Positions 4,352 through 64,000 of a stretch of DNA of 64,000 nt are shown one piece after another (the stretch's first letter is position 1; each line of letters opens with the position of its first letter). The stretch is from the NCBI GenBank assembly GCA_964019335.1, contig OZ025707.1, positions 186,001 to 250,000 of the forward strand, written 5' to 3'. This DNA comes from Diplonema japonicum (lineage: Eukaryota > Protista > Euglenozoa: Diplonemea). The notes beneath the pieces are model-generated. The model saw nothing but the letters and a program-made list of their open reading frames with translations, was not told where the DNA came from and made no database searches. Position numbers and translations under genes: made by a program.

Positions 4352-4390
4352 AAAAAGTCTCGTTCCCGAAAAAAAAAGAGGAATGGAAAA
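4352..4390 (+). other. 39-bp A-rich in-frame insertion in an ankyrin repeat (also 13483-13521)
   Basis: KYL-KKSRSRKKKRNGK-LVKT interrupts the repeat consensus; ends A-run|CTTGTT like the two retro insertions; CTT is duplicated. Confidence 0.6.
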
Positions 4391-9081: not shown

Positions 9082-9134
9082 GCAGGAGAGGTGCGGCATC
9101 ACGCACTCTTTCCGTTTCATGCAAAAAAAGAAAA
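9082..9134 (+). mobile_element. 53-bp extreme 5'-truncated copy of the same retrotransposon 3' end, 10-bp TSD, in frame (also 18213-18265)
   Basis: CAGGAGAGGTGCGGCATCACGCACTCTTTCCGT matches 8701-8733; decayed A tail; TSD CTTGTTGAAA at 9072-9081 and 9135-9144; 63 bp total = 21 codons. Confidence 0.9.
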
Positions 9135-10364: not shown

Positions 10365-10399
<35 letters not shown>

Positions 10400-27634: not shown

Positions 27635-27996
27635 GGCACTACCACGACAGAAGGGATCAAACACTAGATGAGTTGATTGTCGTTAGGCGATCCTGTCACA
27701 TACTGCAGGTTCCCTTCAAAGACATCTTTTTTTTGCCAAATTTTCAACCTCCCCCCCCCCCCCCCCCCCCCCGTACATTTCTTTTTTATAAAAAAAATCA
27801 CTTTCTTTTTTGACCATTCTTTTATTATTATTATTATTATTCCAAGCAAAAAAAAAAAAAAAAAATCAGGTATTTTTATGTCCCCCCTCTCCCCGTTCTT
27901 CTATTTTTTTTTATTGTTGTTCCTTCTATTATTTTTTTTTTTTATATTGCGTCTTCCCACCAAAAAAAAAAAAAAACTCAAAAAAAAAAAAAAAGA

Positions 27997-33607: not shown

Positions 33608-33705
33608 TTTAAATTGTTGCATGATAAAGTCCTGATCTAAATAAGCACAAAAAAAAAAAAGTGATGGGGTATTTTTCGGTCTGAAAAAAAAAAAAAAAAA
33701 AAAAA

Positions 33706-33822
33706 ATGGGAGTGAAAAATCTAATGCTGATGGTGCTCAGCTTCATCGTGGGCTCGGCGCTCACCATGCTATTCTCAGGATTCTTCATCTTGAACAAAAC
33801 AGGCACGGCCATGGGGGCCATC

Positions 33823-33894
<72 letters not shown>

Positions 33895-35710: not shown

Positions 35711-38700
35711 ATGTCAGTACTACACACCCCTCAAAGTATGTTCTTGCTAGCATGCCTGCTGTTGATGACAGAGGTACAAACTGCAAGCGGAGGATGCAGC
35801 CAGCAAGGCCTGCGCCGTGCAACGGGCGCGATACCCCACAACGATGTTAAACATCTTGCGAAGGAGGCGTTTGGGAAAAAACCGAGCGAGCTGCAAGAAA
35901 GAGGAATCCCCTGCGAAGGATGCAGCCAATCCACCGGCGACTCGAAAATTTTCAAACCGCTAAAAGTACATATCATAAGCTTACTAGACAACCCGCTCCA
36001 CGCGTGCCAATCACAAGGCTCCACAATACCACTCTCTCACGACCCCCAACAAGGTGCTACAACCCCCCGGGGACTCGAGACAACAGACAACGGTGTTTCC
36101 TACACCTGCCCGGAAGCATGGGTAATGAACAAAGCAAAGAAAGACGCATTACTGAGAGCGGTCTCGACGGCGGTGACACGCATCCGTAGCACAATAACAC
36201 CCGTGAGGTGGAGTGAAGAAGAAGCAGTGGTCGAACTTCCTACAGCATCGGCAAACTGCAGTGCGACAGGACATCACGCAGCCCTGTCGGACCTTCCCTT
36301 CCCCGCTGATGGTGTTGAAGCCGATCTCGTTCTTTACGTTGCGGCGATGCCGGTTCTCTGGGCCGACGGGAACCAGAAGCAGATTGACATCAATGCTGCA
36401 GGGTGGGCCTGCCATTATTCGCTCCCAACCTACCGTCCGAACGTGGGGTTTCTCACCTTCCACCCTTCGCAGGTGTTTGTTGAAACTTCCGAGTCGCATT
36501 ACATGTCAAGCGTTGCTCTTCACGAGCTTGTTCAAATCCTCGGTTGGTCGCACGACCTTGCCGAACAATCCAAGTACATCCAATGGAGCACCGACCGGAC
36601 GTCGTTCACATCCCTCCCCCGCATGACCGTCACACGGGACCGGTCTAACAAGAAGAGTTATGATACCGATGTTGTTCGTGAAAGGCTCTCCTTCTTAAGT
36701 GATGTATCGTTCCATAACTACCCAGGGGTCGAACCGGGTATTGAGGGGTTTCAAGGTTGGCAGACCACATCGCCTGTTGGTACGCCTGACAAGATCACAT
36801 TGGTCACGACGCCCACTGTCGTGCAGAAGGCGAGGGAGCACTTTGGATGTGAGGATCTTCAGGGTCTTGAGATTGAGGACTACACCTTCAACGCCATGGA
36901 GAAGAAGGCAAACTTCAACAACTTCCCCGCTGCTTTCACTATGTTCTGGGAAAAGCGTGTCCTAAACGGCGAGGTCATGAACATGAAGGTGGAGGCGAAC
37001 GCTGCCCTTTCCGTTCTCACCATAGCCTTTCTTCAGGACACCGGGTACTACCGCGCGGACTTCTCCGCTGCCGAACCTCTTTCCTACGGAAAGGGTGCTG
37101 GCTGCTGGTTGCCAAACGAGCACTGTTCGAAGTGGCCGTCCACCTACCAATGCTACATCCACAACAGCTATGCTAACCCCACCACGGGATCTACCCAGTG
37201 CCTCCTTGATAGGACAGCGGTGGCGATGTGCAACGGGGTGCTTCCTACATCATTCCTTAACCCTCCCCGTGTACCCAGGGAGTACATCCACGCTGACACA
37301 TGGCTCAGCAAAAAGGGTGACCCGCAGCCCATCTACGCCACGAGCAGTCTCGACGAATACTTCTGGGAACAGATGGCGCGTGCTGCCGGAGGCTGTGATG
37401 CGATGATGGACTACTGCCCTGTGTGGCAGCAGACGTCTGTGGCTCAGGGTTGCCTTGACTCGCGCAACATGAACGGCAACAACGAGGACTGCAGCAAAGG
37501 CAGCTGTTCGCTGTACAGCGAGGCAGGTGACTCTTCAAGGTGCTTCGTCGGCGACGTTACCACAAGCACGCTGAGCGCACCGCGAGGTAGGTGCCTGCGC
37601 ACCGCCTGTGTCGCAAGCGGCTCCGGATCGCACATCCTTGAAGTGTCGGTTGGCAACAACATCGTGGAGTGCACGGCTGCGGGGAAGGTCAACCTGGGGA
37701 AATCTGCCGCGCCCTTCACAGGGTCCATCATGTGCCCCGATCCAAACGAGTTTTGCGGGAACTCAATGAACTCGGAGGGCGGTGTGATGCTGACAGACGT
37801 GGGCCCTGTGCAAGAACCGCACATCACAAAGGTCGGTGAAGCGCGTGACTTTTGGATCCGAGCGCAGAAGGCAGGCGAAGCGTACGAGGGAAAGGACGAG
37901 ATTGTCATGTGCGTGGTGGCAGGAGAAGCTGCAAAGATAGACGTGACCACAAAAGGCGCAACATGTCAACAACTGGTGGACTACGACCTGACCAGCAGGG
38001 AATGCCCGGGACTCTCGGTTGATGACCAACCTAAGACCGCAAGTGAATGCTACGCCGCATGCTGTGCAGACTCGAAATGCGCTGCATGGCAATGGAAGAT
38101 TACTGGTGTCTGCGTCCGTGGCGAGTCCAGCTCCAGCTGTGTTGCAGGGGGCGCCGACGTTTCCGCAGGTGCGCGGATATCCCACACCGTGACCGCCGAG
38201 CCACCCAAAGGGGCACTGCTTCCTGGCGAGAGCTGCAAGGCGAAGTACGTCACACGTCTGGGCTTCGACATCGACCCTTCACATGAGGGCTTTGCAAAGT
38301 TCACTGCAACGTTCACCTCGTTGAGCGCTAAACTAGTGTTCTACGGAAACGGGAAGGGCTTTGCGAACGTTGTGACGAAGGACATTGCTGTGATGCCCGG
38401 CGCTCCTGCGAGGGCTTCCATCAGCGCGCCATCGGCGGGCAGTGCGGTGCGCAACGGGGAGCCGTTCACCGTTGTAGTCGATATCACAGACATGTTGGGG
38501 AACCCTACGAACGGGAAGCTACGAGGTGCTAGGTGCCCGTGGGGTGCACCTGCCGATGTGCTGGACTCCAACATCGACAAAGACGCGACGCTATCTGTCG
38601 ATGGGGACTGCTTCAAGTACTACAGCACGCCGATGACAAGAGAGGGCGCTGCGGCAAAGTGTAACGCTGAGGGCGGCACCTTAGCAGGTATCGGTAGCGA

Positions 38701-41700: not shown

Positions 41701-44700
41701 ATTAAGCGCGCTGTGGACATGCGCCTCACCAAACGGCGAGGGGCTGAAATGGGAAGGCAATGTCGAGGTGGGGCAGTGGTACACAATGAAGGTAAACGCC
41801 CTTGAAATAGCGACAAGCTGGGCGGGGCGGCCGCAATTTATCGTCCAACAGGAGTACTCAGGGTCCAGCGGCATTAGCTCCGACGATGCTCTTATCGGTT
41901 GCAGCTCCTCGACTCAAGACAATGGTGAAGACACCGGCAAGGAGTGCACACCGGGTTCCCCATGCGTTCCTTCGTGCGGCATTGTCGAGTTCAAAGGCGC
42001 TGTGCTAGAAAGCCAGGCAACGTGCTCCGAGATGACCCTCCAGCTGTCGGCCTCATCACCTAATCTACAGGAACCGGGCAGCTGCAACATTGCAATGGGG
42101 TGCGTTGAATTCAGCTTGGCCACTCCGCGAGAGATCACAGCAGGGCAGCCTGTTGCCGCGTCTGATATATCTTTCAGTGTTATTTCCTCTGGAATTCCGG
42201 TGGGCAGCACGGACCCTTTGCAGCTGATGGTGACCAACAATGCCAGGGTGGGGTGGAACCTACGAGTCGTCGACTGCAACAGTAATGTGATTAAGACGTG
42301 GAGCAGTTCTTCCGACACACTCGCGTCGCCGACATGGCAGTCAAGCTCACTGGCGACACCACCTCAGTGGGGGCCCTCTGGGTACACGGGCACCTGCGAC
42401 GAGCTTGTGTTCGTATTGTCTTCACCCACGCATCCTGTGAACGAGGCTCGAAACACAGTAAGCGTCGTCACTTCACCTCCTAAAGAGGTTGTGGCCGTGA
42501 AGGGGCTACCCTCGTGCTACGAGGCATGCGACCCCACAGTTCTGTTTGGCTGCGATGAGCTGAAGTGGTCTGTTGAGTTGCGTTCAGAAGAAGGTGCGCG
42601 TGTGACGACAGACGCCGGCAAGAACGTACCGTGCACAGCTACTATTCAGCACAAGAACCCCAGCACCGGACTGTGGGAGGCGTCAAACTTCGTGACAGGA
42701 GCAGCAACCGCCGTGACGAGCAACGGTGTTGCTTCCTTCAGTGCTTCGTACACCAAGGTAGGGAGCATCAAGGTCACCACCACCTGCCTCTGCTACGACT
42801 GTGGTGCAGGAGCTACCTTGGAAGAGGTCACAGACGTTGTTGCTGCGGAGCCTGTTGCTTTGAAGTGCGCAAAGTCGCCTGAAAAGGCGGTGCTGGCAAT
42901 GGACCCCTTCGTTGTGCAGGCTCAGGTGCTCGACGCCTACGGCAATGCCATCGGTGCAAAGGCACAGGGCATGGAGCTTGAGCTCACAGCAGAGGTCTCT
43001 TCAGGGGCGTTAACAGGTGAGCGCATTGCCAATCTGGGCACGACGGGCGAGGTGGTCTGGTCCAACCTGAAACTGAACAAGGTTGCTTCTATAAGGCTGC
43101 AGATTGCTGTGCGGTTACCTGCTGACGTCCCAAAGGCCTTCTCCTTCGAGGGGTGCTACAACGACTTTGCCGCGCACCCGCTGGTCAACGAGAAGAACTG
43201 CGATCGCAAAGTGACGCTCACTTCCATGACACCCGAGATGTGTTCCGAAGAATGCCAACGATACCCTACATTTGCTCTAACAAGCTCGAGCCCCGGCACT
43301 CCAGCCTCGGTGTGCATGTGCTTCACTGATGATGTGGTTACTGCTAAGTACGGCCGCGCTGAAGAGTCCAATTGCATATCTGGTTGTGAGGGCGATCTGC
43401 AGGCTGTGTGTGGCTCGATGCCCAACACCGATGCCAGGTACCTCGCCGTGTACAGGAGGGACAAAGCGTACCCTCTGCCGCTCCTTGCAGCGCAGTGTCC
43501 GGTGTTTAAGGTGTACCCGAACAGCCCATCGGCCCTCCGTCTGGTGAAGGAACCCTGTACTGATGATGGCATGGCTACTTACCTTGGAAGGTGCAACCAA
43601 GACACACATGCCGGAGTATGCCCAGAAGCTGCTGTCGGTCAGAGTCTCACTTATGCGGTGGACGTGGTCGATGCTGGGGGGAACCTCGCAGACATCAGCG
43701 GGGAGTACACCCACTTTGGCGTTAAGAGCGAACTCATCAGCGACTGCAAATCGAAGATAAGTGCAACGGAAGGTAAGGATGGGAAGGTGACCGCAAATCT
43801 ACAAAGTTGCAACCTTGAAGCTCCCAAGAACCCTTTGGTCAGCCTTGCGCTGGTGTCCACAGGCGATGTAACGAGCTTCATGGGTGGGGGTTCTAAGTCT
43901 TACGCGGAAAACGCAAAGGTGACGTTCAGCGTTGTGCACACCAAGACAGAATGCATATCCGTGAAGGCTGTTGCTGACGGGCTGCTCGACTCGAAGGTGT
44001 CGAACGAGGTCTGCTTCCATGCAGGCCCCATCGCTTCTATTGAGATCAAGGGAGCGCCTGTCAGCGTTGCAGCCCACAGCCCTTTCCCACCCACTGTGGC
44101 GACCGCACGGGATACCTATGGAAACCTCGTAAAGTGGAGCAGTGCTAGGCTGCACATCGAACCATATGACGAGGGTGCTGAGGAAGGTGCTGACTCGGAG
44201 TGCATGTACAACGGACGTGCTAGATCCACGAACAGCTTGAGCCACGTAGGGAAGCAAGCCCCCGACGGAAGCTACGACAGCGAGGCCTACAGCCCTGTTG
44301 CTTTCCTCTCCGAGGGTGAGGCGGTCTTTGGTGGGTTCACCTACGCTGCGCTTGAACCTGGGTTCAGCACAACCTGCTTGAGGCTGCTTGTCCGCTTGAA
44401 ACGCGAAGCGGCAGTTCCACAAGTCTACAGCTGCAGCGCTGCTGTCTCTTCGGAGCTGATCACGAAGCTTTCCATCCCAGAGGAAGCGTACACTACTGTG
44501 GAGGCTAAGTCGGACAGGATAGTTATCACGGGCAACAAGCTGACATTCACGTCCCAGACAAGTATCATCAAGGTTCGTGCTGGCGAGCTGTTCAATGTTG
44601 AAGTGTCGCCGACCCTTGCGTCTGGCGTGAATTGCTGGATGCAACCTGCAAGCTGCGACTTCAGCTTCAAAGTTCTAATGGAACAGCAAAGTGGACCGGG

Positions 44701-56700: not shown

Positions 56701-59700
56701 GTTCCTTGATGACATCGGCGAAACAGTGCAGGTCCTGGTGCGTGTGGACCCGAAGATTATCGCTGTGCACAAGTTGCAGAACAGCGTTGTCCAAGCAAGT
56801 GGACTGTCATGCAGGGTGTCCCCACCTGGCTTCCTGCAGGACATCAGGGAAGTTGGGCTGTACCACAATGAGCCCGTGAAGCTGGCGTCCTCGGAGCACG
56901 ATCTCGCTGTCTTGTTTGATGAACCTTTTGCCTTTGGAGTCAGCGCAAAGCAGCAGGACAGGTACGGCAACGTAGCATGGGACGCCGGTGAGCGCTACGG
57001 CGTGGTTGGGTGCAAGCTGGAGCGCAACTACGTAAAGAGCGGTGCCATCGAGGACACCCTCTACGGTGCCCCTACAACCGACCAAGCCGCTCGGGTAGAA
57101 CTGCGCGTCAGCGGCACCATCAGCACCTTTAATTCTGCTGCTTATGCCGCAGACTTTGCAACGATCGCCGGTGTGGACCCTAGTACCGTCACAATCATCA
57201 GCATCACTGAGGTCACAGGTGACCCGTCCGTTGCTTCTGCAAGCCAGGGCAGGAATCTGCTGCAGGTGGTGACGTACCTCGTCGTCGTCATCGAATTGAA
57301 AGTGCCGGATGCCACGAAGGTCTTGAGTGAGTACGTCACATTCGTGGCGGACGTCGTCAGCAGATGTGACCCGGTTACAGGAACGCCAGAGCAATGTTGT
57401 GTGCGTGGTGCGCAGAATAAGTTAACCTGCTTAGGTGGTTCGCAGTGCACCAGTAACTGTGTGCTGGCTGTACCTGTACAGAAAATCGTTCCCGGCACAC
57501 CACCAGTCTCTATTCCGCAAGCAACACCGGTGGCAACGCCTGTGGCTACACCTAAAGACCCGAAAGTTACACCAGTTGCCACACCGGAAGCAACACCCGT
57601 TGCCACCCCTGTGGTCACACCTGTGACAACGCCTGTGGCTACACCGCAAACGACACCAGTTGTTACACCCGTTGCTACACCTGTGGTCACACCTGTGACA
57701 ACTCCTGTGGCTACACCGCAAGCGACACCAGTTATTACACCTGTGGCCACGCCGCAAGCAACACCTGTTGTTACACCTGTTGATACACCTGCTGTGGTGC
57801 CTGACGGCAACGCCCCTGAAGCATCGCCATTTCTGAATGACACGTCACCCGACTCAGCACCAGACGACTCGCCTCTCATGAATGACACGACGCCGTCCGA
57901 CGTGCCCGATGACAACTCCACAACACCGAACGCCTCCGAATCAATGGCAGGGGGGAGGAACTTGCTGCAGTTCCAATCGCCAGCTGATGCTTACTTCGCG
58001 CAGCATGAGCTCGAACGGGGCCTTACCAACGCGTTGCTCACGCCGCATCCTGTCTCTGGTGAGTACCCTAAGAAGGAGTTCTACGTCCCGCAGCTGCTGA
58101 TGGGGATGAAGACAGACTTGACCACCGCCCTTGGGTCCTCGTCATACTTCAAGGGACAGTTGTGGTTCAGACAGTCATTCACAAGGATGATGCAGGGGAC
58201 TTTCACGCTGATGACGACATGCGAGAGGTTGTCACCCGGGCAGCTGCGCATCGACGACCCGCAGGCACCCGCGAGCTACAGAGTGGAGACGGGCAAGGTG
58301 GATGTTGTGCCTAACATGATCTCGATTGTGAAGGCACCCGGCGCAGATCAATGCCGTAGAGCAGGCGATGCATTCTCCTTTACAGCTAGGCTGCTGCTTG
58401 CATCAGGGGAGACCCCCTCTGTAGCACCTGCAAACGTAAATCTAGTAGTGTCCATTGGTGGCGAATCAAAGAAAACAGGCCCGTTCAGCTGCAACGACAT
58501 TGTTCGGGACGCCAGAGGGGAGTACGAGACAGTGTGCACCATGAACACGAACAGTGCACCTCTCAATCAACGGATCCCTGGGTTGGCATCTTCTTACGCC
58601 CCGGAAGGGGGAGGGACTGGTCTGGACAGGAACGACAGGTGGACCTCAACGGACCCGATCACGGAGGTTATAATGCAGGAGGACGCGGACTCGGAGTCCA
58701 GGACGTACTCGTCGGCGATGCTCGGCACTGCAATCACTTTCATCCCTGCATGTGCTAGCAAGATGACTATCTTCGATGAGCCGCCACACGAGGTTGTCGT
58801 GCACAAACCTTTCACAGTCGGTCTTCAGCTTGAGGACACCTACGGAAACGTGGGTGGGTCTTACGTTGTTCGCATGGTGGCATACTCAGCAGACCCAACA
58901 GCTGGTGGTCAGTGGCCCAATGCCGTCAACCCTGCAGCAACTGCTGTGGATATTCAGTCTTCGCTGCTTGATGGCGGCTCTGCGTACAACGACGCACCGA
59001 CCGTCCTTGGAAAGCTGCAGTACCACGACCTGTTCCTTGAGTCTTCGTTCTTGAAGAAATTAGGCAGCAGCTCTCAAGGCTATGTGTGGCTTGTTGCGTA
59101 CGTTCTTCCGTCGTCGGGGACAGGCTGCGACGGTGATTGCGACCCTTATGCCCAGACAGGCCATGCTTGCTCTGCTGCAGGCAACACCCGAACAGCATCC
59201 TTTGGCTGTCTGTACCATGTCTTCGCACCAGTGCTTGTGACGCCCGATGTGCCGGCGAGATGCGAATTTTTGCAGTACCCCAGCTACTTCACAAGCGGCA
59301 TGACCGCGGGACACGAGTATGGGGAAACTTTCAAAGCGAGGGTTCTTGACAAATACGGGCTCCCCATTCACGAGTTAAGCCCCTCGATGTCGGGCGACTT
59401 GCTGCTCCTCCAAGGCACCTCGTCCCTGCACAAGGGGTACGAGTTTGAAAGCTACGACAGCGCTGCGATACTCACTTCGTTTTACGCGGAGAGCTCGCTG
59501 AGGCTCACACACACCACTGCGGTGGACACCAGTGGGGGTGATGTCTTGTTGCGTGTGTGGGTCCGCTTCCCAACCATCTCAAGAGGCATCGCGCAGAGCA
59601 TCCTCAGCATCAGGAACCCCACGACAAGCCTGGCCGCAACTGTTGACTGGGAGCCCATTGCATCCCCCAACCCGGGGAGGGAGAAACTCCAACAGGTGAT

Positions 59701-62700
59701 TAAGATCACAGTGCAGCAAGTGGATGGAACTGGCTCAGTATCGGCAATGTACAACGTGCGTACCGGTGACATCTCCGAAGGGTGGGGAGTGTGGGAGTTC
59801 AAAGTGAAGGAGGTAACGTCAAGCAGCACTTCTGTCGACATTGATGTGTCAGTGGACGCAAGGAGCCTAGCATCCTTGTCGATGCCATGTGGGGACATTG
59901 GGTGTGTTAACGAGAGCGATCCCAACGTGCCGAAGACGCTCAGCGAAATGTCTATCGGTGCAGGGATGCGTCTCTTCCAAGCTGTGGTCAAGTCCGGCAC
60001 CACGCCCGTCCTAATTGCCCAGTCTCAAAAGCTGTTCGAAGGGACCACTGGGGGTGTGGAAACGACACCCACTGGGTGGTACACCGGGTCCAACGTCGAG
60101 CTGCAGTTCGACAATCCGATCGACTCCAACGCCAGATTCATCCAGAAATATCCCATTGTGGAAGAGTGTGAACCGTCGGCGGAGGCATCACCGCCTACCA
60201 CCAACCCTCCCAACTGCCTCAGAACAAGCCAAGGCCTCAACCTCATGTGGGACAATGTGTGGTATGGCACGGCAGAAGAAATCGTCGTTGGTGTCAGCAT
60301 CCCAGGACTCCCTGTGTGCAGCACCCCGCCTATTGCAGTTTCAGCCGGCCCTCCGTATAAACTTGCGTGTGGCACCCCGCATGCCAAACTCACCCCCGGT
60401 ACCCCCAGAGCGTCATCCGTCTTCATACAAGACATCATGGGCAACAGGGCTGCGTGCTTCGGTGTCTTCACGAAGAACGGTAACGAACATGTTGTAGACT
60501 GTACAACGGGGACGGCGAGCGTCGGTGTTGCTGGGTTGGAGACGAAGCCGCTTCTGCAGCCGTCCTCGAAGACCACGGAGCCCTTCCGTGAGTCTGCAGA
60601 GGCGAACTTCGTCGTGTCGTACGTGCAGCCTGAGTCTCCTTCCCTACCTATGGGCGGCGCTGAGGAACTACCCTCCGACAAGTTACAAGACTACGGGATC
60701 ACAGCTGACAATGGTGACTCTGAAGGTTGGGACGTAGCAGACTACAAGGGCTCATGGAGTCGTGGGTCCGACGCTTCTGGTGACAAGTTCTTCCAAGCCA
60801 CAGATGTCGGCACAGGCAACCCACTGTACACGCAGTACCTCACTAACGGTAGAAAGAACGCTGGGGCGCAATGTGCTGGCGTCAAGGAATGTAGTGCCAA
60901 CGAAGACCCCACCATTAACAACTGTTGTCGCTTGAACAACCCTGGAAGGGTAGTTGGCTCTGCTGTCTATTCGCTGCAGTTCCGTGTCATGGCAAATCTT
61001 GCGGCAGACAAGTCCCCCACGTCAGACACTGCTAGAGTGGAGGTCACATACTGGAAGGGCGGCGAGACACCTGTGGAGCTTCTCACAATGAAGCACACCA
61101 TAAAGGGAGTCCAGTTGCCTGTTACCACATGGCAGGAGGTGTCTGTCCCCCATGTAACGCCCACTGGCGCTGTCTACGCCACAATAAGAGTCATGTGCTG
61201 GAAGCTTGACCCCAAGGTTGACAATGCTTGCCGGGTTCTCTTCAATGATCTGGACCTTGTGCGTCAGGAGGGCGGTTCTGTGTTTTTGCAGTATTCGTCG
61301 ACACTGGATCGCATCGGTGGCGGGGCGATAAAGCCCGTTACTTGTGGGCCTGCTGAAATTGTCCCAGAGATGAGCCAGCCAGCGGCAGCAGCAGCGTTGT
61401 GCACACCTGCTACTTGCAACTACAACGGGATCTGTTCAGGCACGTGGAAGTGCCCCAAGGCCTTGTCAGATGCCTTCCCGTTGTACTGTTGCTCTCGGGC
61501 TCTGTCGTTTTGCTGCAGTGGGTTGCTCCGCAGCACGGCTGATGCAGAGTTCCGTGAAAAGTGTGGTGTGAACTTCTGCAGCGGGATGGGCGGCAAGGTC
61601 ACCATGCCCAGCGCGTGCTCTGTTTGCTACGATGACGACGACAGAGGCCACTGGGCAGGGTCTAACTGTGAGAAGTGTAAGGAAGGCTTCTACGGAACAC
61701 GCTGTACTGAAAGGCTGTGCGAGGTCAACCCCGAAAACGGTCGTGAGTGCTCCGGACATGGTGTGTGCAGGAGCGACGGACAGTGCAAATGCTTCGGCGA
61801 AGAGACTGCCAAACCCAAGGTTGTATTGGCGCTGAGCATTACCGACGACTTCATGACCGTAACCAGCACGCAGGCCTCAACAGCAACCGCCGTCACACCG
61901 GCATCCTTCTCTTCTTGCAATGCAGTCCTCGCATACTACGCCGACAGTACACGTGCTTGGGGCCTTCCCGACTCTGGTGTCTTCTCTATCAGCGGCACAC
62001 CATCGGCATCTTCATACTACTGCAGATTCTTCCAGGACAAGAACTTCCGTCACCACGGAGCTGCTCTTGTGGGTGGTGTTTGGAAGGGCAAGGGCAAGCT
62101 GGCAAGCAACGTGGCAACTGCGATGGGCACCACGACAAACCAGTACCTTCCCCTGCAGCTTCTTGGAACGAACCAACCAGGCTCGCGCATGTTCGAGTTC
62201 CCCGCCACCGATGCCATTGTCGGGCGCAAGTGGCTCCATTCCACGCTGCAGGACGGTGGCAAGACAGGTGGCGCCTTTGCGAGATACCCCCCTGCGGACA
62301 TGCCGTACATCATTCTGTCCACAAACCCTGTCTACACACCTTCTGCTGAGTGGGTTATGCTAAAACTGTCCGATCTTAAGGCCGCTCTGAGCACTGTGAT
62401 TGGCAAGAAATCGGAGTCTGCATCGGTGGTGATTAAAACTGTGGTGGGTAACGGAGAGGAAACCAACACACAGAGTGTGTGCGTCTATGCCAGTACGCCG
62501 TGTGCAACATGCGAACCGAAGTTTGTAGGAATCTTCTCGAAGTGTGAAAAGGGCGATGTGAAAAACTGGAGATTGTGGTTCGGCGAAGGGACCACCGACG
62601 AGGGGCAGAGGCTCGTGGCACAGTCCGTCCGTGTGTTCGTCAGCGAAGCGGCAGACGGGATGGAGTTCCCGACATCACAGCAGGACTGGTCGATGGCAAC

Positions 62701-64000
62701 GGTGGGGAACATCCCGATTCAGATCAGCACAAGAGCACCCTCTGGCTTCGTAACGGCAACCGCCGGAAGCCTCATTTCCAAGAAGCTTTTGTGGCAGGAC
62801 TGGAATGGGATCCCTGTGACTGTAGCAGACATGTCTACTACTGGGCCTGGGCTGGTTGACGTGACGTTCAACACCGAGAGCACATTTGAGGCACTCCCGT
62901 CATCTCTTGTCGAACTGCGTTGGGTGCGTGTTGTGTTCTACACCCTGAACGCCGGCAACACAGATGTTACTTACGAAGTCACCCTCACCACGAAGAGCGG
63001 CCGTACGATCATGGCAACTGCCGACCAGCGCGGAACCCTCTCAGGGTCTTCATCGTCTGTCGAGAGCACCGCGCAGTGGAGCATCGAGACCACCAACATC
63101 GACGTGATGGATCTTATTGGCCTCACGGCAAGGATGCACTTCAGCAACACCGCCTTTTCAGGTGATTTCCAGTTTAACGGTGCTTTGTTGCAGGTGGGCT
63201 ACGAGCGCATCTCACCTCTTGATGACTTCGGCTTCTCAGCTTTCTTGAAGATCAGCAGAGTCGATGAAGCCATGCCGATGACGCTATTCCGTGCGACGCA
63301 CTCCACCGGTGGCACCGTTCAGGTCGATCTCAACACCGCGGCCAACGGCAACGTTTTGCCCGGCTCCGCCAGGGTGATGGTCGTCGACTCCACTGGCAAC
63401 CAGCTGGTGGGGGTCGCCAAGGGTTTATTCAACCTGTTCTCCAACAACTGGGTGCGCCTGTCCGTGAATGCCAGCCTCACAGAGAGCACCGTCCAAGTGT
63501 TCCTCGGTAAATCCAAACTCGAGAACAGCAAGCCAGCCCTCCTCGAACAGTCAGTGAACATGGCAGCGACTGACAGTGTCATGCTAAGGTCCTTCTCCTG
63601 GATGGACCAGCCCATGTCCTTTGGGTACGACAAGTCACGTTTTACTGGCTTCATTCGTGACATTAAGGTGACCCTCGGATCTGGTGAGGAGATGGTGGAC
63701 GTTCTGTCTCTGCCGTTGGTGAACGGGGTGTGGGGTTCGCAACTGAGCCGCACCGCAGGGAAATGGCTGAATAGCACCTTGCCTGCGAGCGGCACGAGCT
63801 ACGATGGTGTTACTGATGTGGATGTCCCCTTGAACCTTGGATTCTGGGCGGGTAAGCTATGCGGTTCATGCAGGTCAGGGTACCATGGCGGGTCATGCAT
63901 GGACAAGGACTGTACAAGCGACGCCCAGTGCGGACAGGGCTACTGCTCTATCACTAACACATCCCTTTTCTTTGGCCAGTGTGTCTGCAACGAGTACTAC
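35711..64000 (+). CDS. Giant secreted/surface multidomain protein, at least 9,430 aa, 3' end beyond the window
   Basis: ATG 35711 (or 35738: MFLLACLLLMTEVQTASG signal peptide) after in-frame stops at 35621-35626; every stretch I translated in this frame is coding-like up to the last base (GQCVCNEYY), and the ORF track lists no closed ORF in this frame, as expected if there is no stop. Confidence 0.9.
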   Translation, partial: MSVLHTPQSMFLLACLLLMTEVQTASGGCSQQGLRRATGAIPHNDVKHLAKEAFGKKPSELQERGIPCEGCSQSTGDSKIFKPLKVHIISLLDNPLHACQSQGSTIPLSHDPQQGATTPRGLETTDNGVSYTCPEAWVMNKAKKDALLRAVSTAVTRIRSTITPVRWSEEEAVVELPTASANCSATGHHAALSDLPFPADGVEADLVLYVAAMPVLWADGNQKQIDINAAGWACHYSLPTYRPNVGFLTFHPSQVFVETSESHYMSSVALHELVQILGWSHDLAEQSKYIQWSTDRTSFTSLPRMTVTRDRSNKKSYDTDVVRERLSFLSDVSFHNYPGVEPGIEGFQGWQTTSPVGTPDKITLVTTPTVVQKAREHFGCEDLQGLEIEDYTFNAMEKKANFNNFPAAFTMFWEKRVLNGEVMNMKVEANAALSVLTIAFLQDTGYYRADFSAAEPLSYGKGAGCWLPNEHCSKWPSTYQCYIHNSYANPTTGSTQCLLDRTAVAMCNGVLPTSFLNPPRVPREYIHADTWLSKKGDPQPIYATSSLDEYFWEQMARAAGGCDAMMDYCPVWQQTSVAQGCLDSRNMNGNNEDCSKGSCSLYSEAGDSSRCFVGDVTTSTLSAPRGRCLRTACVASGSGSHILEVSVGNNIVECTAAGKVNLGKSAAPFTGSIMCPDPNEFCGNSMNSEGGVMLTDVGPVQEPHITKVGEARDFWIRAQKAGEAYEGKDEIVMCVVAGEAAKIDVTTKGATCQQLVDYDLTSRECPGLSVDDQPKTASECYAACCADSKCAAWQWKITGVCVRGESSSSCVAGGADVSAGARISHTVTAEPPKGALLPGESCKAKYVTRLGFDIDPSHEGFAKFTATFTSLSAKLVFYGNGKGFANVVTKDIAVMPGAPARASISAPSAGSAVRNGEPFTVVVDITDMLGNPTNGKLRGARCPWGAPADVLDSNIDKDATLSVDGDCFKYYSTPMTREGAAAKCNAEGGTLAGIGSDGVENLLSFHGGDEWWTGLKALGRGLPLMVEWDSGTSTEWFDTRYGDPFSSSYKPGSFAKGCCFGLWKSTHFGHHKTHYYEESPDIDKCISYDASGDHPFMADCYRELPFFCQFKPSVKVMLSSEDSNIVTAEPVSITGTKAIFRNVRVSRNAPFSSNQHAETFKLSVSTNAPQAITSEKKDFVFSAGEVSVLRTSIQTASGPVTRETVQAGGSFVVVVNTQDRAGSFVPWSEPIRVTVKYANGEDATTASTTCTSQREGQCVWEVSGFKKTGILDIKTTSGELTPKPSSVRVEIIAGPPCKLEPISCPSTGKFGVALGTASFQIVDCHGNKVCNSSAAQEVSLSGSAKEPLKTTFDTNCNGVTTPSACCTGLTGQGQPTCEGAGCVWGSAYNDQKQCPTNTCCYSRNGADLLPLRGGIKEEAAKLCFPNKYGVLYESKAQPRTELGNCADSEPSDFEDWFTFTPTREGKLVLTLEGKSVAITDANAYTNIGEVCAPVAPLTGSTAQYDSYVWNNAQYCDRGVTHLFDAAKCTDTSMTSDLCEQRCTDAGSNGASPCIGFQYSTLLEENKVGMSVDVLSAAVQRTGCPNVNRAWNPSALGWGDASEGEILIDMYQACTNVLTNAASDRENEICCGRDSAGSLLTCAVTQCTFLQTMRKTSCPAAYPYAYVISNVERCCSDDLMNTAITARTCTVGNSVKCSAVSDTKGSWTITVTTNIAAEPILTASFWGTKANTPSASWITEVNDASCTATGKAWHIVSGSSSLARLMCKQTASDSLTIATTQFGSQSKYPKRDFLGCYDATDASITWTALLLHEKVSDCSAVCRGYNLWSMGCPRADGTFECRCGTGTLPTPPHEPYKCWGSETTDQCDGGVEQGSDGVIYGAGGDSNVIAVYGANIDDSIRGSVPCVDFYAFDEHRCELFMEGHDVADSLLTTAAYTDFERGNRQNENSLVNVLKTATPAPDSLGTSTCWKKGFAYQQKKATYSMNVFGPAQKDADMSLSALWTCASPNGEGLKWEGNVEVGQWYTMKVNALEIATSWAGRPQFIVQQEYSGSSGISSDDALIGCSSSTQDNGEDTGKECTPGSPCVPSCGIVEFKGAVLESQATCSEMTLQLSASSPNLQEPGSCNIAMGCVEFSLATPREITAGQPVAASDISFSVISSGIPVGSTDPLQLMVTNNARVGWNLRVVDCNSNVIKTWSSSSDTLASPTWQSSSLATPPQWGPSGYTGTCDELVFVLSSPTHPVNEARNTVSVVTSPPKEVVAVKGLPSCYEACDPTVLFGCDELKWSVELRSEEGARVTTDAGKNVPCTATIQHKNPSTGLWEASNFVTGAATAVTSNGVASFSASYTKVGSIKVTTTCLCYDCGAGATLEEVTDVVAAEPVALKCAKSPEKAVLAMDPFVVQAQVLDAYGNAIGAKAQGMELELTAEVSSGALTGERIANLGTTGEVVWSNLKLNKVASIRLQIAVRLPADVPKAFSFEGCYNDFAAHPLVNEKNCDRKVTLTSMTPEMCSEECQRYPTFALTSSSPGTPASVCMCFTDDVVTAKYGRAEESNCISGCEGDLQAVCGSMPNTDARYLAVYRRDKAYPLPLLAAQCPVFKVYPNSPSALRLVKEPCTDDGMATYLGRCNQDTHAGVCPEAAVGQSLTYAVDVVDAGGNLADISGEYTHFGVKSELISDCKSKISATEGKDGKVTANLQSCNLEAPKNPLVSLALVSTGDVTSFMGGGSKSYAENAKVTFSVVHTKTECISVKAVADGLLDSKVSNEVCFHAGPIASIEIKGAPVSVAAHSPFPPTVATARDTYGNLVKWSSARLHIEPYDEGAEEGADSECMYNGRARSTNSLSHVGKQAPDGSYDSEAYSPVAFLSEGEAVFGGFTYAALEPGFSTTCLRLLVRLKREAAVPQVYSCSAAVSSELITKLSIPEEAYTTVEAKSDRIVITGNKLTFTSQTSIIKVRAGELFNVEVSPTLASGVNCWMQPASCDFSFKVLMEQQSGPGKSCQKCGSDTIAGASKIVSFNAIDKKDAGTYVFAFWGMSDTTVLAPAYLTVVVVPDNPSRLAFTSCEGNLQAEAHIAGKQFRHAVQVEDKYGNPVSGWVNPITLSAVFAGGSRELLSWKDSPPTAIASPSATFQVSIDDALLNDTYTLIARSSGSYTPTALLDTASLQQAATSGSIASNIASLNLDLSTARCSSVAVRPDTAVKCRAKLDGTGSMIKAGSDFTVKVEFYDKYDNAITQQLSQEGKTAQVSLLAPAKGILNGMTKRKISGAQVVFTGLSYEVSPDTITVAVTLSGIDGVSSCATEALKVIPDDPSSLKVTSIAKVSNPSSWKAPRTAIAGPTGSEEGSPLVAGEKFCVKVSVVDRFGNVVDETDPDIRARYGRVPAGAGELPPRNDKFMGNAEVPVLGYITSAVDRFLNLMGGGPAPSLGNTDRVSGRRPPVLDGGSSPSTQQQQSTAPFARTVQLSRYDCAYGGCASDDTLQGKVTQQGTGGEYTFCDVWYERSECITIEAASEGLQSDVTEKVCVDHSVWSKLRCDSDVRRASQYRPMGTFVGTLLDKYGNEAKNCGRDFANGCTVRIRELSEGSGYTPGGKLTDSTLSPGTVRESTNPKGNLVAVSSQNSGIVSFENVYYTRERPQADPLRLELVGPGSIRATCSNSEAYPIVVVASQVACVDSPSEVTAGDTFDVTGEFRIYDSMTGIYEEVVCPGDAKCDTEVFLAASGGSSGKELERFFLSEGARGDAGVVPDCGSNANEASCTGASPLCSWTLREGEPFATGVTEQCHTNNFTGVAAIGSLVKFMNLKFHKAGIINPVITPTLGFAGVAEMADSEVVPPGECSPLKVVAAKPYELCMGPDVERAPDAASLNVLTDMQFPDADTYANLPNLINTVQCAQACNARVQCYRWTFTSATGLCEFKSRGGSAEPQTGAVSGCSGNYEDAICDDAKPTGRCEKCTAEVAGTCGTCPAKTVLAGQPLNFVARAHDIWGNIADDKNTNNVAVTCKVTKGPSGNAKHQPRLYPWAAMRMTSESFSGLVGVASMATPTLKVAGKYTVSCWADVRTKDGAFQSGLPTATDPDTAGGVVWTPVLKTDSHEISADQFLKMLDASPNRVIKRTCPACPNVSHREIYVRILTRTTVALFERLKSSWTAAGNVEGIDYTLHSTYKDAIQGTNPWRYCSADETETCNAKSGSSSTCNGDKWCLFDSTRASGTECYAKDVGFPGWCAPTSATTAGNWNTWDPEFSFFTKATSVEFFVETAPGCSERDGQPVGTTRELLGRTESLTACVAIVKERYHGLDSLLEADGASWFEGKCYAEFSNTEEAEDRKAEWMFNNAEPNWRSCQYPQVNLYVKSLRGCICDGVRCPCSAPPTSDPKLRKDCNIEVLPAAPASLACLSRAPDLFVGSGLDIKVSIQDEYANRKTGIFGPAVRMYTEGGTAVNGGLVPSVPAASLEAGVADLQFMYNTAEDVTLEVETDVVGMEGKRFKCPAAVNDGDTATCCSNKKNCPGASKLAVCPGDLSGLVFLDGPEHDVPCDKPSVTANRKFPTIRVGVFDSRGNLKSFTGLNVTLSVASDGPDGAVPMGVLGGTLSQLTADGVATFDDVSYSKAERIILRAGAMEVSAVSGKSIRTIYRSNRVARVCPGDICRLTVKQSPSTCSFDEENPDAVVIGVEDSTGNPLVSHQADDCKVVLSVATSDTITNASWLDDRSLAPSDAPMEWHRLSDATPVATTEADFRGEYLERSLYMHTVTREADESSSGTSESFVVYGGATVLPGLGSSVYSEVLAARSTYLPSGAPTLRNNVWRYNMRTNVWSKLWSPPAGGTFPAARYGHMAVVVEAKVGTKEAYLFVFGGRTGSAECCDNKLWRFGPLYDENGPALGSSMSWTELEMSDNSVSVQLAHSTAVSFGQRMYVFSGIGGDSTVDMVNAPVDGSVGSKQLFVVDLRDALTTTVTAKLSWKKVKLATGTPLPRGRVQASSVLSGSKWFVVGGALWPSAASIPTPSNEIWSLDLRELETAESAMWKLESASGPDLAGSSVALDSVHNYLLVLGGSPSITGQFGNNVATRASNTIRRYSIERRQWLIEAAEDVAVGTAGCTTRLELEWSGGSATGAVGTDPEFLTRCSTKTQSDCEAGMGVCSTLTTRAACLGDSTDSASDGWRCGWDSVSNTCKEGCLWRDGSSNNGVSPGRRTYAASANGQVYKDPTSSQTRVFFFGGATTPSPESAYLCSGYTVPNTIFGTDVTIACSGDPDVWWVGPVTSDSAEAQRKHAWDMSERCVDPDSSATFSNCATLWRSKTDCLAATSNVSSTGASCLWQAVDEQCSQTDNSGCITITGSTAAVTNSEATFHHVVIGSLRNLPPELYYCQAKAATDQATCDAHTDITSCNGNSLCLWQRQRPTKQMTLQLKASITCATARPSTSCPTIEPIDIPVMSCSRCKLAVLPGSSPRSGARSTLAGKQLVGGTSETGSPFQAHKFGDITVGVVGPNGAVLATNIAEEVATGAIQLKVARTTPGASVDSVTPLKDVTAGAATYEGSSIPGAVFSSVEWTAGNAPATMWVRAEHVNGVCQDSELWPVNVVPDEACDWLITQQQTVRAGDPFSVEVLLKDELGNIAYCGVQEDAWRTGNKVIKSALLSSWVECKNLCDGTSKCMMWNYATSEVTHNDEVVLARTCLLYDEAGKIAQNGMVKIQGGISGMSGVVPCPEGAYLKMEAVSMPADKMPVKPLGTLFSEKHGFGASICYLSETLDMLEHTNRQACLSCCKESSSAFVVEHWDPLSEEYRCGCSAISNHKEWVSSSKCNGVAANRLGYYVTVTELVNEFRREITGHALTFDSLWHNKAEKLVLMFEHSIRTDCPVRYSKEITVTPSAPHHLNVLEVPKEAYASLCGPDEGFDAVFEIVDFWNNRVDATHRVMLQLHEGRGRIDNTAVAAEAGVVRFRVAYDVAERIQLLAIDLDIAGDWTPDEHPASAQQCTAPCYNNNCKNPTPAQCCKLTRPIDIWSGPAAKLVTIEQPPSTPRSFASGRCSPFSYTVELQDKCGNPITEAWSKQYYNAYKDVPLMIEVSSRNANLYKNGDMPGNYHGVVSDLMLRNGKAVIEATYSKADCGVGFAVKVATPGGGVIEAATPNELCVMHCEPDHLKIVEPASCHDVTIPTLPTIGASSKLTPVKVAVLDADGNVCDTANPLHSRRLGCFKDEAGTAMPHKIPIDTASLSIDSCMAACYEAGFNRFGLQQGSMCFCGDGDGYSKYGRNEEIECTTGCAEGTDPNCGGSDSNAVFEIISTYAAVQLTTRNYTLYDANALDPRLSIKAVAGNGGQLVGGVTMPALEGYAVLQAVWLPDRDIRDICRATPTTTGCIGQVTIQAIDTTMSVKPDFCNMQVKRDQVMCSSEAIKTRANERFDIWSWVNALSGALPSTVSSVKITVFDEYGDLRLDPSSDITQSGTQYSLTFATADVPNTKANAVYFKNLYYTSKIDGTGSARRRITIQSDYAQECTIEVEVLPARATECVVSPPKGSCLLAGELFNVGVEMKDSLGNRVATEGARCLTRHSGLVCPNSKKLANAVPQSLAEIRALQGLFNPNRPAEQINLNIGTRRRNGALELFAEDTLQYISDLHVMGQIPWHTVPTDLNALADEVSKGTKCIALDKAVTYANDPSTAATYSFTWKVVECGELWETVCVDTVKGASCPTGVVSPMSTASISLVGAQQGAGGKDVLEVRPATTMGGMAEFVGLRYTRAAVERVFSVSATDQLGLPMNGCSDKRFSLSFAPNVPKTLDSEIWADEEVSEGVVCLSCAPHDQFNILVSALDEYGNHVSWECSGNRQTHASETVGLINIQVVQGTGKLIKSTGTGRPEAAWPGKKLDKGSVVFKGLRYDRADMPVFHVNPRQWSSSLGDAPAGPTETLRFHACFPWSLEITSLPEEAVAGKPFRVDVAIKDKYGNMLTLDPYKLVSSRSPPVEFQFLLPQHNEAPHSVLQIDSNDIPGRLSFVVTQTRILWQVQKMFLDDIGETVQVLVRVDPKIIAVHKLQNSVVQASGLSCRVSPPGFLQDIREVGLYHNEPVKLASSEHDLAVLFDEPFAFGVSAKQQDRYGNVAWDAGERYGVVGCKLERNYVKSGAIEDTLYGAPTTDQAARVELRVSGTISTFNSAAYAADFATIAGVDPSTVTIISITEVTGDPSVASASQGRNLLQVVTYLVVVIELKVPDATKVLSEYVTFVADVVSRCDPVTGTPEQCCVRGAQNKLTCLGGSQCTSNCVLAVPVQKIVPGTPPVSIPQATPVATPVATPKDPKVTPVATPEATPVATPVVTPVTTPVATPQTTPVVTPVATPVVTPVTTPVATPQATPVITPVATPQATPVVTPVDTPAVVPDGNAPEASPFLNDTSPDSAPDDSPLMNDTTPSDVPDDNSTTPNASESMAGGRNLLQFQSPADAYFAQHELERGLTNALLTPHPVSGEYPKKEFYVPQLLMGMKTDLTTALGSSSYFKGQLWFRQSFTRMMQGTFTLMTTCERLSPGQLRIDDPQAPASYRVETGKVDVVPNMISIVKAPGADQCRRAGDAFSFTARLLLASGETPSVAPANVNLVVSIGGESKKTGPFSCNDIVRDARGEYETVCTMNTNSAPLNQRIPGLASSYAPEGGGTGLDRNDRWTSTDPITEVIMQEDADSESRTYSSAMLGTAITFIPACASKMTIFDEPPHEVVVHKPFTVGLQLEDTYGNVGGSYVVRMVAYSADPTAGGQWPNAVNPAATAVDIQSSLLDGGSAYNDAPTVLGKLQYHDLFLESSFLKKLGSSSQGYVWLVAYVLPSSGTGCDGDCDPYAQTGHACSAAGNTRTASFGCLYHVFAPVLVTPDVPARCEFLQYPSYFTSGMTAGHEYGETFKARVLDKYGLPIHELSPSMSGDLLLLQGTSSLHKGYEFESYDSAAILTSFYAESSLRLTHTTAVDTSGGDVLLRVWVRFPTISRGIAQSILSIRNPTTSLAATVDWEPIASPNPGREKLQQVIKITVQQVDGTGSVSAMYNVRTGDISEGWGVWEFKVKEVTSSSTSVDIDVSVDARSLASLSMPCGDIGCVNESDPNVPKTLSEMSIGAGMRLFQAVVKSGTTPVLIAQSQKLFEGTTGGVETTPTGWYTGSNVELQFDNPIDSNARFIQKYPIVEECEPSAEASPPTTNPPNCLRTSQGLNLMWDNVWYGTAEEIVVGVSIPGLPVCSTPPIAVSAGPPYKLACGTPHAKLTPGTPRASSVFIQDIMGNRAACFGVFTKNGNEHVVDCTTGTASVGVAGLETKPLLQPSSKTTEPFRESAEANFVVSYVQPESPSLPMGGAEELPSDKLQDYGITADNGDSEGWDVADYKGSWSRGSDASGDKFFQATDVGTGNPLYTQYLTNGRKNAGAQCAGVKECSANEDPTINNCCRLNNPGRVVGSAVYSLQFRVMANLAADKSPTSDTARVEVTYWKGGETPVELLTMKHTIKGVQLPVTTWQEVSVPHVTPTGAVYATIRVMCWKLDPKVDNACRVLFNDLDLVRQEGGSVFLQYSSTLDRIGGGAIKPVTCGPAEIVPEMSQPAAAAALCTPATCNYNGICSGTWKCPKALSDAFPLYCCSRALSFCCSGLLRSTADAEFREKCGVNFCSGMGGKVTMPSACSVCYDDDDRGHWAGSNCEKCKEGFYGTRCTERLCEVNPENGRECSGHGVCRSDGQCKCFGEETAKPKVVLALSITDDFMTVTSTQASTATAVTPASFSSCNAVLAYYADSTRAWGLPDSGVFSISGTPSASSYYCRFFQDKNFRHHGAALVGGVWKGKGKLASNVATAMGTTTNQYLPLQLLGTNQPGSRMFEFPATDAIVGRKWLHSTLQDGGKTGGAFARYPPADMPYIILSTNPVYTPSAEWVMLKLSDLKAALSTVIGKKSESASVVIKTVVGNGEETNTQSVCVYASTPCATCEPKFVGIFSKCEKGDVKNWRLWFGEGTTDEGQRLVAQSVRVFVSEAADGMEFPTSQQDWSMATVGNIPIQISTRAPSGFVTATAGSLISKKLLWQDWNGIPVTVADMSTTGPGLVDVTFNTESTFEALPSSLVELRWVRVVFYTLNAGNTDVTYEVTLTTKSGRTIMATADQRGTLSGSSSSVESTAQWSIETTNIDVMDLIGLTARMHFSNTAFSGDFQFNGALLQVGYERISPLDDFGFSAFLKISRVDEAMPMTLFRATHSTGGTVQVDLNTAANGNVLPGSARVMVVDSTGNQLVGVAKGLFNLFSNNWVRLSVNASLTESTVQVFLGKSKLENSKPALLEQSVNMAATDSVMLRSFSWMDQPMSFGYDKSRFTGFIRDIKVTLGSGEEMVDVLSLPLVNGVWGSQLSRTAGKWLNSTLPASGTSYDGVTDVDVPLNLGFWAGKLCGSCRSGYHGGSCMDKDCTSDAQCGQGYCSITNTSLFFGQCVCNEYY
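35950..37760 (+). other. Leishmanolysin/GP63 (peptidase M8)-like domain with degenerate zinc site
   Basis: ADLVLYV, YRPNVG, HELVQILGW (36521), TPTVVQKAREHFGCEDLQGLEIED, MFWEKRVLNGEVM (36941), LTIAFLQDTGYY..AEPLSYGKGAGC, MMDYCP. Confidence 0.85.
38600..39045 (+). other. C-type lectin-like domain within the giant ORF
   Basis: DCFKYYSTPMTREGAAAKCNAEGGTLAGI...WWTGL...C..ELPFFCQF. Confidence 0.7.
49900..51400 (+). other. Kelch beta-propeller within the giant ORF
   Basis: FVVYGG..NNVWRYNMRTNVW, PAARYGHMAV..LFVFGG, MYVFSG, WFVVGG..NEIWSLD, LLVLGG, VFFFGG. Confidence 0.75.
54262..54535 (+). other. WSC domain (others near 41080-41390 and 43142-43460)
   Basis: LGCFKD...LSIDSCMAACYEAGFNRFGLQQGSMCFCGD...CTTGC...CGG...AVF. 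Confidence 0.8.
57521..57790 (+). repeat. Mucin-like 12-bp (xxTP)n coding repeat
   Basis: ATPVATPVATP...VVTPVTTPVATPQ, about 20 tetrapeptide units. Confidence 0.85.

Follow-up and report, generated by a model that had tools for sequence, protein, structure and literature searches.

The 64,000-nucleotide window analysed here (Diplonema japonicum, assembly GCA_964019335.1, contig OZ025707.1, positions 186,001 to 250,000 of the forward strand) raises a simple question. Does the reading frame that opens with a signal-peptide-like start at position 35711 and runs off the end of the window belong to a single gene and, if so, what kind of protein would it encode? An earlier note, drawn up from the letters of the window, had proposed a hidden and intronless giant frame for a glycan-binding surface adhesin. 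We find that the frame is the main part of one expressed gene, made of a 31.6-kb first exon followed by five small exons and comprising 11,029 codons. The product is best read, from its module content, as a secreted multivalent glycan-binding filament or matrix adhesin that would serve in attachment, in prey or particle capture or in coat formation. We give this reading a probability of about 0.6.

Frame +2 is free of stop codons from 35627 to the window end, which makes 9,458 codons, or 9,430 when counted from the ATG at 35711. It continues into the adjoining downstream genome stretch, whose positions are given here as window-equivalent coordinates (position in that stretch + 64000). There it stays open to 67507 and meets a TGA at 67508, 10,599 codons from the ATG, and translation revealed no in-frame stop before that point. 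The runner-up among the stop-free frames of the window has only 1,146 codons, which excludes a chance origin for the giant frame. The guanine-plus-cytosine content is 56-58% across the whole frame versus 38-48% in the non-coding flanks. The hidden giant frame of the earlier note is thus real; it was missing from the track of open reading frames (ORFs) because the ORF listing omits frames running off the window.

The first 26 residues (35711..35788, + strand) read as a signal-peptide-like N-terminus, MSVLHTPQSMFLLACLLLMTEVQTASG, and two paralogues described below, B and C, have equivalent hydrophobic N-termini. Supporting the start at 35711, the alignment with a 7,319-residue relative, P0012, begins near both N-termini, residue 7 of the relative aligning to residue 13 of the giant protein. 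The signal peptide proposed at this position can therefore be kept. Internal duplications of the giant frame were found neither at the DNA level nor by BLASTP of the protein against itself. BLASTP self-comparison is blind to the immunoglobulin (Ig)-like repeats discussed below, because these are too diverged and a hidden Markov model (HMM) is needed.

One would wonder whether such a frame could be an artefact of assembly or annotation, either neighbouring genes of a polycistron that share one frame or a collapsed assembly. Euglenozoan genes are indeed arranged in same-strand polycistrons (PMC10161547). However, the 10,549 stop-free codons of the first exon are beyond chance, and independent runs of three studies hold the sequence with a word share of 0.99-1.00. 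Two 32.2-kb DNA contigs (studies P1 and P3), long enough for the whole exon, match it without differences in the aligned stretch. Moreover, the same frame is open in three paralogues, and single Trinity ORFs of 6.8k residues in other species are collinear with it. An artefact is thus extremely improbable, and we regard this explanation as effectively refuted.

The last ~50 codons of the open frame enter A-rich low-complexity DNA that starts with CACCAG/GTACGG. We aligned contigs of four public runs (X1, X2, X4 and X5) to the first 6,000 nt downstream of the window. Five blocks of the reference are absent from single and otherwise unbroken contigs of X2 (17,657 nt) and X5 (13,922 nt), and each of the five gaps has exactly one GT..AG solution of matching length. 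The X1 and X4 contigs (32.2 kb) keep the five blocks and follow the uninterrupted genomic sequence up to a homopolymer. Since they lack the five GT..AG blocks, we infer that the X2 and X5 contigs are spliced and RNA-derived. Assuming collinearity, the X2 contig would reach from 51226 to 69126 and take in no less than 16 kb of the giant exon as well as the spliced tail. The X5 contig runs on into intergenic DNA, as expected under polycistronic transcription.

The resulting gene model lies on the + strand. Exon E1 extends from 35711 to 67357 (31,647 nt, 10,549 codons), with its part inside the window (35711..64000) entirely open. It is followed by E2 (67407-67529, 41 codons), E3 (67567-67866, 100 codons), E4 (67922-68098, 59 codons), E5 (68156-68848, 231 codons) and E6 (68895-69041, 49 codons), with a TAA stop at 69042-69044. 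All exons are in phase. The introns occupy 67358-67406 (intron 1, 49 nt), 67530-67566 (intron 2, 37 nt), 67867-67921 (intron 3, 55 nt), 68099-68155 (intron 4, 57 nt) and 68849-68894 (intron 5, 46 nt). The gene is therefore not intronless, as had been proposed, and its introns, 37-57 nt long, are of the size seen in diplonemids whose introns are short and canonical (median 41-42 nt for D. japonicum and S. specki; PMC12621601). With 11,029 residues, the unmodified protein would have a mass of ~1.18 MDa, in line with the estimate of ~1 MDa or larger.

This model agrees with transcripts of other species, whose coverage corresponds to residues 521-1664 and 2982-10549. In Namystynia karyoxenos and Artemidia motanka, the transcript ORFs match E2 and E3 with no residue between the two matches. 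There follow a gap of 59 residues, the size of E4, and then E5 and E6. Both ORFs stop four residues past the E6 match, the C-terminus thus being common to all. The tail exons recur in the paralogues on contigs C2 and C10, separated there by introns of 33-37 nt. E5 and E6 are contiguous in both paralogues, so that intron 5 must have been gained or lost within the family. A single coding exon of 31.6 kb in a eukaryote bearing spliceosomal introns is of interest in itself, and it is the kind of gene that automatic annotation fragments or misses.

The giant ORF is not unique in its genome. In the 62.5 Mb searched (132 contigs, the gene itself, called A here, lying on C60), we found three more giants of the same family. 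These are paralogue B on C2 (a 10,830-codon frame), paralogue C on C10 (10,884 codons) and a fourth member with an M8 head on the - strand of C50 (C50:325333-347946), more distant than B and C, in which a 7,538-codon frame ends at one in-frame stop, beyond which it stays open for 420 more codons. The proteins of A, B and C are collinear from end to end of the 10.5k residues, A being 53% identical to B and C in each 500-column window. Between B and C the identity is 91%, and their ratio of nonsynonymous to synonymous substitution rates (dN/dS, Nei-Gojobori) is 0.07, with values of 0.04-0.10 across all eleven windows. Constraint on the coding sequence, in the form of strong purifying selection, therefore extends over the entire length. 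Large frames on C14, C44 and C51 are unrelated, having only EGF-like or M8 pieces in common with the family, and two 469-codon upstream frames are not paralogues either.

Relatives were found only in diplonemids, namely D. ambulator, Namystynia, Artemidia and one further genome, and none has a functional name. A profile of residues 8690-9400, searched against 1.84 billion representative proteins, gave 11 matches, 8 of them strong and nearly all to very long proteins. The relatives comprise EP01059_P019169 of D. ambulator (6,823 aa), EP01062_P037580 of N. karyoxenos (6,827 aa, without the middle ~4,250 residues) and EP01065_P052486 and P021047 of A. motanka (4,744 and 4,486 aa). They also comprise the ENA gene models P0002, P0003, P0006, P0007 and P0012, the profile matches including gene models from one further genome, where they lie on large contigs. 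A word-indexed search of 5.8 billion clusters yielded one further relative, P0012, with precomputed Pfam M8, Kelch and WSC domains. The family members are collinear over thousands of residues at 24-65% identity and have the tail exons and the C-terminus in common. Identity between the D. ambulator protein and B and C is 63-65%, as compared with 48.5% for A.

Word-indexed searches with residues 1-5000 among long proteins and with the C-terminal 1,119 residues among mid-sized proteins gave no match, nor did a PDB sequence search with P0005. Pfam returned nothing useful for the tail exons, the C-terminal 1,119 residues or the Artemidia relatives. In our literature searches such proteins were nowhere described, and the D. 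papillatum genome paper does not contain the words leishmanolysin, giant, adhesin or lectin. The earlier note had not recognised the architecture, and our search for a characterised full-length orthologue in these databases and this literature found none.

What does this architecture consist of? The protein begins with a leishmanolysin (peptidase M8)-like domain at residues ~80-690 (35948..37780, +), which matches PF01457 at 4.3e-36 (125 bits against a cut-off of 21) and PDB 1LML at 9.3e-13. The proposed M8 head is thus present, with a degenerate zinc site. Leishmanolysin binds zinc via HExxH and a third histidine. In the giant protein, HELVQ replaces the HExxH motif at residues 271-275 (36521..36535, +), as it does in paralogues B and C. 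In TMFWEKR (residues 410-416, 36938..36958, +), a residue-level alignment places a phenylalanine at the third zinc-ligand histidine of the 1LML sequence SHIKMR, a change that is also found in B and C. The Met-turn is kept downstream of TMFWEKR, where EVM aligns with ELM of 1LML. Two of the three zinc-binding histidines are lost, and the M8 head of the giant protein is therefore probably not a protease.

The likeness to leishmanolysin (GP63) is thus one of homology over the N-terminal ~600 residues, with the catalytic glutamate and the Met-turn retained. Unlike GP63, the giant protein has HELVQ and a phenylalanine at the second and third zinc histidines. Moreover, whereas GP63 has ~600 residues, the giant protein goes on for more than 10,000 further residues and lacks a glycosylphosphatidylinositol (GPI)-like tail. 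The fourth family member, on C50, displays HELIH and IHWEKR, and orthologues elsewhere have HELIH or HELVH with I/VHWEKR, P0012 having VHWEKR. The sibling giants of C2, C10, C50 and other diplonemids are true members of one family, and by their motifs they fall into two clades. The zinc site is intact in one of them (the C50 type, with P0007 and P0012) and looks dead, yet is conserved, in the other (A, B and C). Live and dead M8 clades of this kind offer a natural experiment on the change from protease to pseudoprotease.

An N-terminal protease site that is intact in the sister clade, and that could act on its own chain, brings up the possibility of a polyprotein. The precursor would be cut in or after secretion into several lectin-like and Ig-like proteins, and no mature megadalton molecule would exist. 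Such processing is common in giant secreted proteins. However, there is a single RxKR site in the 10,549 residues of the first exon, and it is not conserved among the paralogues. The strict collinearity of modules over 10.5k residues at 53% identity also fits one unit, although cleavage would still be compatible with it. We therefore consider a polyprotein quite unlikely and keep to a secreted filament or matrix adhesin that would act as one molecule.

Beyond the M8 head, the protein carries diverged Ig-like repeats with a DxxGN strand. An iterated internal HMM, whose E-values are circular, found about 24 of them between 38384 and 63568 (+), in agreement with the 20 or more announced by the earlier note. 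They start at residues 892, 1289, 2374, 2621, 2767, 3048, 3192, 3303, 3521, 3948, 4378, 4517 and 4634 and, in the second part, at residues 5572, 5859, 5993, 6125, 6493, 6770, 6899, 7048, 7675, 8208, 8328 and 9195. A 12-repeat profile matches bacterial Ig-like adhesin and S-layer domains at E-values of 1.2e-3 to 0.05 (SbsB/C 1.2e-3, FdeC 0.041), and paralogue C gives weak matches to Big_1 (0.012) and Invasin_D3 (0.027). In at least four repeats, those starting at residues 892, 5572, 6125 and 6493, a Cys-rich module comes directly after the DxxGN strand. These modules are C-type-lectin-like, PAN-like, a WSC and one that is unassigned, which suggests that they are nested inside the Ig repeats.

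The first of these composite repeats (38384..39280, +) contains a C-type-lectin-like module at residues 963-1113 (nt 38597-39049) right after the DxxGN strand. Its signature, WWTGL...FFCQ, is conserved in the three paralogues, and Lectin_C matches weakly at the homologous site in paralogue C alone (15.4 bits against a cut-off of 22.6). A model of the region is of low confidence, with a predicted local distance difference test (pLDDT) score of 55. The top ~50 Foldseek matches of this model are all C-type-lectin-like domains, at E-values of 0.009-0.1.

PAN/apple-like modules may occur at three sites, all scoring 16-21.5 bits against cut-offs of 21.4-27. The first, at residues ~760-810 (37988..38140, +), is weak (PAN_4, E 0.0096, below cut-off), and so is the second, at residues ~3885-3920 (47363..47470, +; PAN_1 0.0051, PAN_4 0.022). 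The corresponding 1000-residue piece of paralogue C gives PAN_1 at 0.0039, the correspondence with the second site being by piece and not by site. The third, at residues 5618-5690 (52562..52780, +), reaches 2.5e-4 with PAN_4 (3.5e-4 in paralogue C) and lies right after a DxxGN strand. An EGF-like Cys-rich module at residues ~8640-8700 (61628..61810, +) is a weak candidate, recognised from its cysteine pattern by eye and giving no Pfam match; this stretch also produces short matches to other large frames of the genome. The C-type lectin, PAN and EGF modules of the earlier note are thus candidates, with evidence that is sub-threshold or of low confidence.

Other modules are better defined. WSC module 2 (PF01822, residues 6187-6268, 54269..54514, +) follows a DxxGN strand and scores 39.8 bits where the cut-off is 27.8 (paralogue C reaches 48 bits), with a match to the WSC domain of Kremen-1 at 1.9e-7. 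WSC module 1 (residues 2481-2572, 43151..43426, +) is below the Pfam cut-off (E 0.001, 19.7 bits) and was recovered by a profile seeded with module 2. With the internal profiles, a third WSC and further copies of the C-type lectin and PAN modules were not significant. Two of the three WSC modules that had been counted are thus supported, by Pfam and the internal profile, but the third is not.

The Kelch beta-propeller at residues ~4791-5080, possibly to ~5230 (50081..50950, +), was correctly recognised, since it passes the gathering threshold of PF24681 (68.9 bits, the threshold being 50; paralogue C reaches 87.9 bits) and matches LZTR1 in the PDB. The mucin-like stretch is also there, as a Pro/Thr-rich region with TPVATP repeats read from the sequence at residues ~7263-7412 (57497..57946, +); a Pro/Thr repeat is found in an Artemidia relative too. 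Matches of this stretch to circumsporozoite protein were discarded as due to composition.

Near the end of the window, residues ~9139-9345 (63125..63745, +) are predicted to fold as a jelly roll of the Laminin-G (LamG)/LNS/pentraxin type. This is seen in an AlphaFold 2 (AF2) model built from 11 family sequences, with a mean pLDDT of 70 (~80 in the LamG part) and a predicted template modelling score (pTM) of 0.69. Foldseek relates the model to laminin LG4-5, neurexin and agrin at 1e-6 to 4e-4 (probability 1.0 at 1e-6), and VIA superposes 152-163 residues with Z 13-15 and a root-mean-square deviation of 2.5-3 A. Pfam gives no match in this region, and the LamG claim is upheld by the superposition of this predicted structure. 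The preceding block, residues 8730-9130 (61898..63100, +), has no recognised family in Pfam or in the atlas searched; it is modelled as folded (pLDDT 70-90), and the fold search with it is dominated by the LamG matches.

Is the protein held at the cell surface, as had been proposed? The extension beyond the window does not support this claim, showing neither a transmembrane (TM) segment nor a hydrophobic tail. Exon 1 contains no hydrophobic 19-mer (Kyte-Doolittle mean above 1.8), the short tail exons being judged by eye. The terminal exon ends in ...SCVYPSQAGTDNPDTGIN and is polar, without any hydrophobic anchor or GPI-like tail that we could see, no dedicated GPI predictor being used. This polar C-terminus is conserved across diplonemids. 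Given this lack of a TM segment or GPI-like tail, the product appears to be secreted rather than membrane-anchored, and it is not demonstrably a surface protein. The protein contains 470 cysteines, and its C-terminal region is Cys-rich. Its last ~280 residues (E5 and E6, 68156-69041) are the best-conserved part, being 53% identical to the hemistasiid relatives versus ~32% overall. E5 and E6 have no family match, and the atlas gave only a weak lead (0.76) to a reelin-like 'subrepeat-EGF-subrepeat'; for exon 5, all atlas leads were below 0.9.

A secreted protein without an anchor could also be the cargo of extrusomes or of the feeding apparatus, released as a sticky thread to catch prey instead of forming a constitutive coat or matrix. 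Diplonemids possess extrusomes and are predators or scavengers, and both the missing membrane anchor and the filament-like repeat architecture would fit a discharged thread. On the other hand, no sequence feature links the protein to extrusomes, and we hold this possibility to be unlikely.

We thus favour a secreted glycan-binding filament or matrix adhesin, which could work as follows. The signal peptide would bring the giant protein into the secretory pathway, and the Ig-like repeats would form a long, semi-rigid, extended stalk. The WSC, C-type lectin, PAN, LamG and Kelch modules displayed on this stalk would provide many weak binding sites, and the Pro/Thr stretch would be a likely O-glycosylated spacer. 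In the A/B/C clade, the M8 head may be a binding or capping module and not a protease, and the strongly conserved last ~280 residues may serve for assembly or docking. The filament or matrix component would act extracellularly, on a target that could be prey, substrate or the cell's own coat.

Several points weigh against this proposal. Secretion, localisation and glycan binding are all read from the sequence. The matches behind the Ig-type assignment are sub-threshold, and those behind the C-type lectin, PAN and EGF modules are either sub-threshold or come from the model with a pLDDT of 55. The nesting of modules inside the Ig repeats is deduced from the order of motifs along the chain. About half of the protein, for example residues 1380-2370 and 8730-9130, has no recognisable family. 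As for expression, the kinds of the X2 and X5 runs are unrecorded, their RNA origin being deduced from the missing introns, and the direct evidence, from the intron-lacking contigs, bears on the 3' ~16 kb of exon E1 and on the tail exons. Finally, N-x-S/T sequons are about threefold depleted in exon 1 (21 versus 68.8 +/- 7.4 in 500 shuffles), as they are in paralogue B (29 observed versus 56 shuffled) and paralogue C (31 versus 53), which suggests selection against N-glycosylation. The glycan-binding adhesin of the earlier note is thus kept as the best reading of the module content, but the word adhesin is unproven.

A parallel can be drawn with the bacterial Ig-repeat adhesins (intimin and invasin with Big_1, FdeC, and RTX proteins such as MpIBP) and the S-layer proteins SbsB/C. 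They too display strings of Ig-like beta-sandwich repeats with a strand of the D-x-x-G-N type, and ligand-binding modules on a stalk, the affinity in sequence being weak (E 1e-3 to 0.05). However, the giant gene belongs to a eukaryote, contains spliceosomal introns and encodes a signal peptide, and its product lacks a beta-barrel anchor, RTX repeats and a type I secretion system (T1SS) signal. In addition, its WSC, Kelch, LamG, PAN and C-type lectin modules are of the eukaryotic extracellular type.

Animal mosaic receptors provide another comparison, since polycystin-1 and sea-urchin REJ, Kremen, and attractin/MEGF8 share module vocabulary with the giant protein. Polycystin-1 combines WSC, C-type lectin and many Ig-like (PKD) repeats, and attractin combines a Kelch propeller, a C-type lectin and EGF. 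Unlike these receptors, the giant protein has no TM segments; no REJ, GPS, PLAT, CUB or PSI domains were detected in it, and it exceeds them in size 2.5- to 8-fold. What they share is a convergent mosaic architecture, not orthology.

Giant modular extracellular adhesion proteins are thus a known kind. What the searched literature does not describe is this particular family, with its size, its M8 heads both dead and live, and its confinement to diplonemids. Among the heterotrophic eukaryotes of the ocean, diplonemids rank with the most abundant; they are hyper-diverse, and very little is known of their cell biology or of how they feed. A family of ~1-MDa proteins of glycan-binding type, under strong selection and extending from Diplonemidae to Hemistasiidae, would offer a molecular handle on how these cells make contact with prey, particles and substrate, or build their own coat. 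A bolder and tentative hypothesis, which we hold to be possible though doubtful, is that these proteins are ancient, diplonemid-specific megadalton secreted filaments with lectin-type modules in the loops of an Ig stalk. Split into active- and dead-M8 clades, they would be the principal extracellular means by which these cells capture prey or particles, attach or form a coat. If true, this would add a previously unseen player to the processing of marine organic matter by diplonemids. Localisation and knock-out tests should be feasible in Paradiplonema papillatum, a genetically tractable model diplonemid (PMC12621601), if a family member is present there.

The neighbouring DNA contains several other genes. 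Directly upstream of the giant gene and on the same strand lies an ORF for a GT61-family glycosyltransferase (33685-35091, +; PF04577, 3.6e-17). The GT61 family includes EGF-domain O-linked N-acetylglucosamine (O-GlcNAc) transferases, and any functional link between this ORF and the giant gene is pure speculation. Further upstream, a 1,146-codon ORF (27814-31251, +) encodes ion-transport domains of the voltage-gated type (Ion_trans, 1e-41). A tandem array occupies 593-21530, with ~2.3 copies of a 9.13-kb unit at 99-99.8% identity. Each unit carries a subtilase S8 ORF (396 aa), an ankyrin-repeat ORF (300 aa) and a reverse-transcriptase ORF (1,135 aa). Downstream of the giant gene, a separate gene at ~70100-74470 (+, window-equivalent) encodes a helical-repeat protein of ~1,450 codons, HEAT/ARM-like by eye, with a basic Ser-rich tail.

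Finally, the genome holds 232 copies of CAGTTTCTGTACTTTATTG, which we take to be the 3' core of the euglenozoan spliced leader (SL) and used as a lead only, versus 0 copies of a reversed control, a count that fits a euglenozoan host. These copies lie on most contigs, often near contig ends or in clusters (e.g. C24:7178-45964), and may be SL RNA genes, retroposed 5' ends or SL-associated elements.

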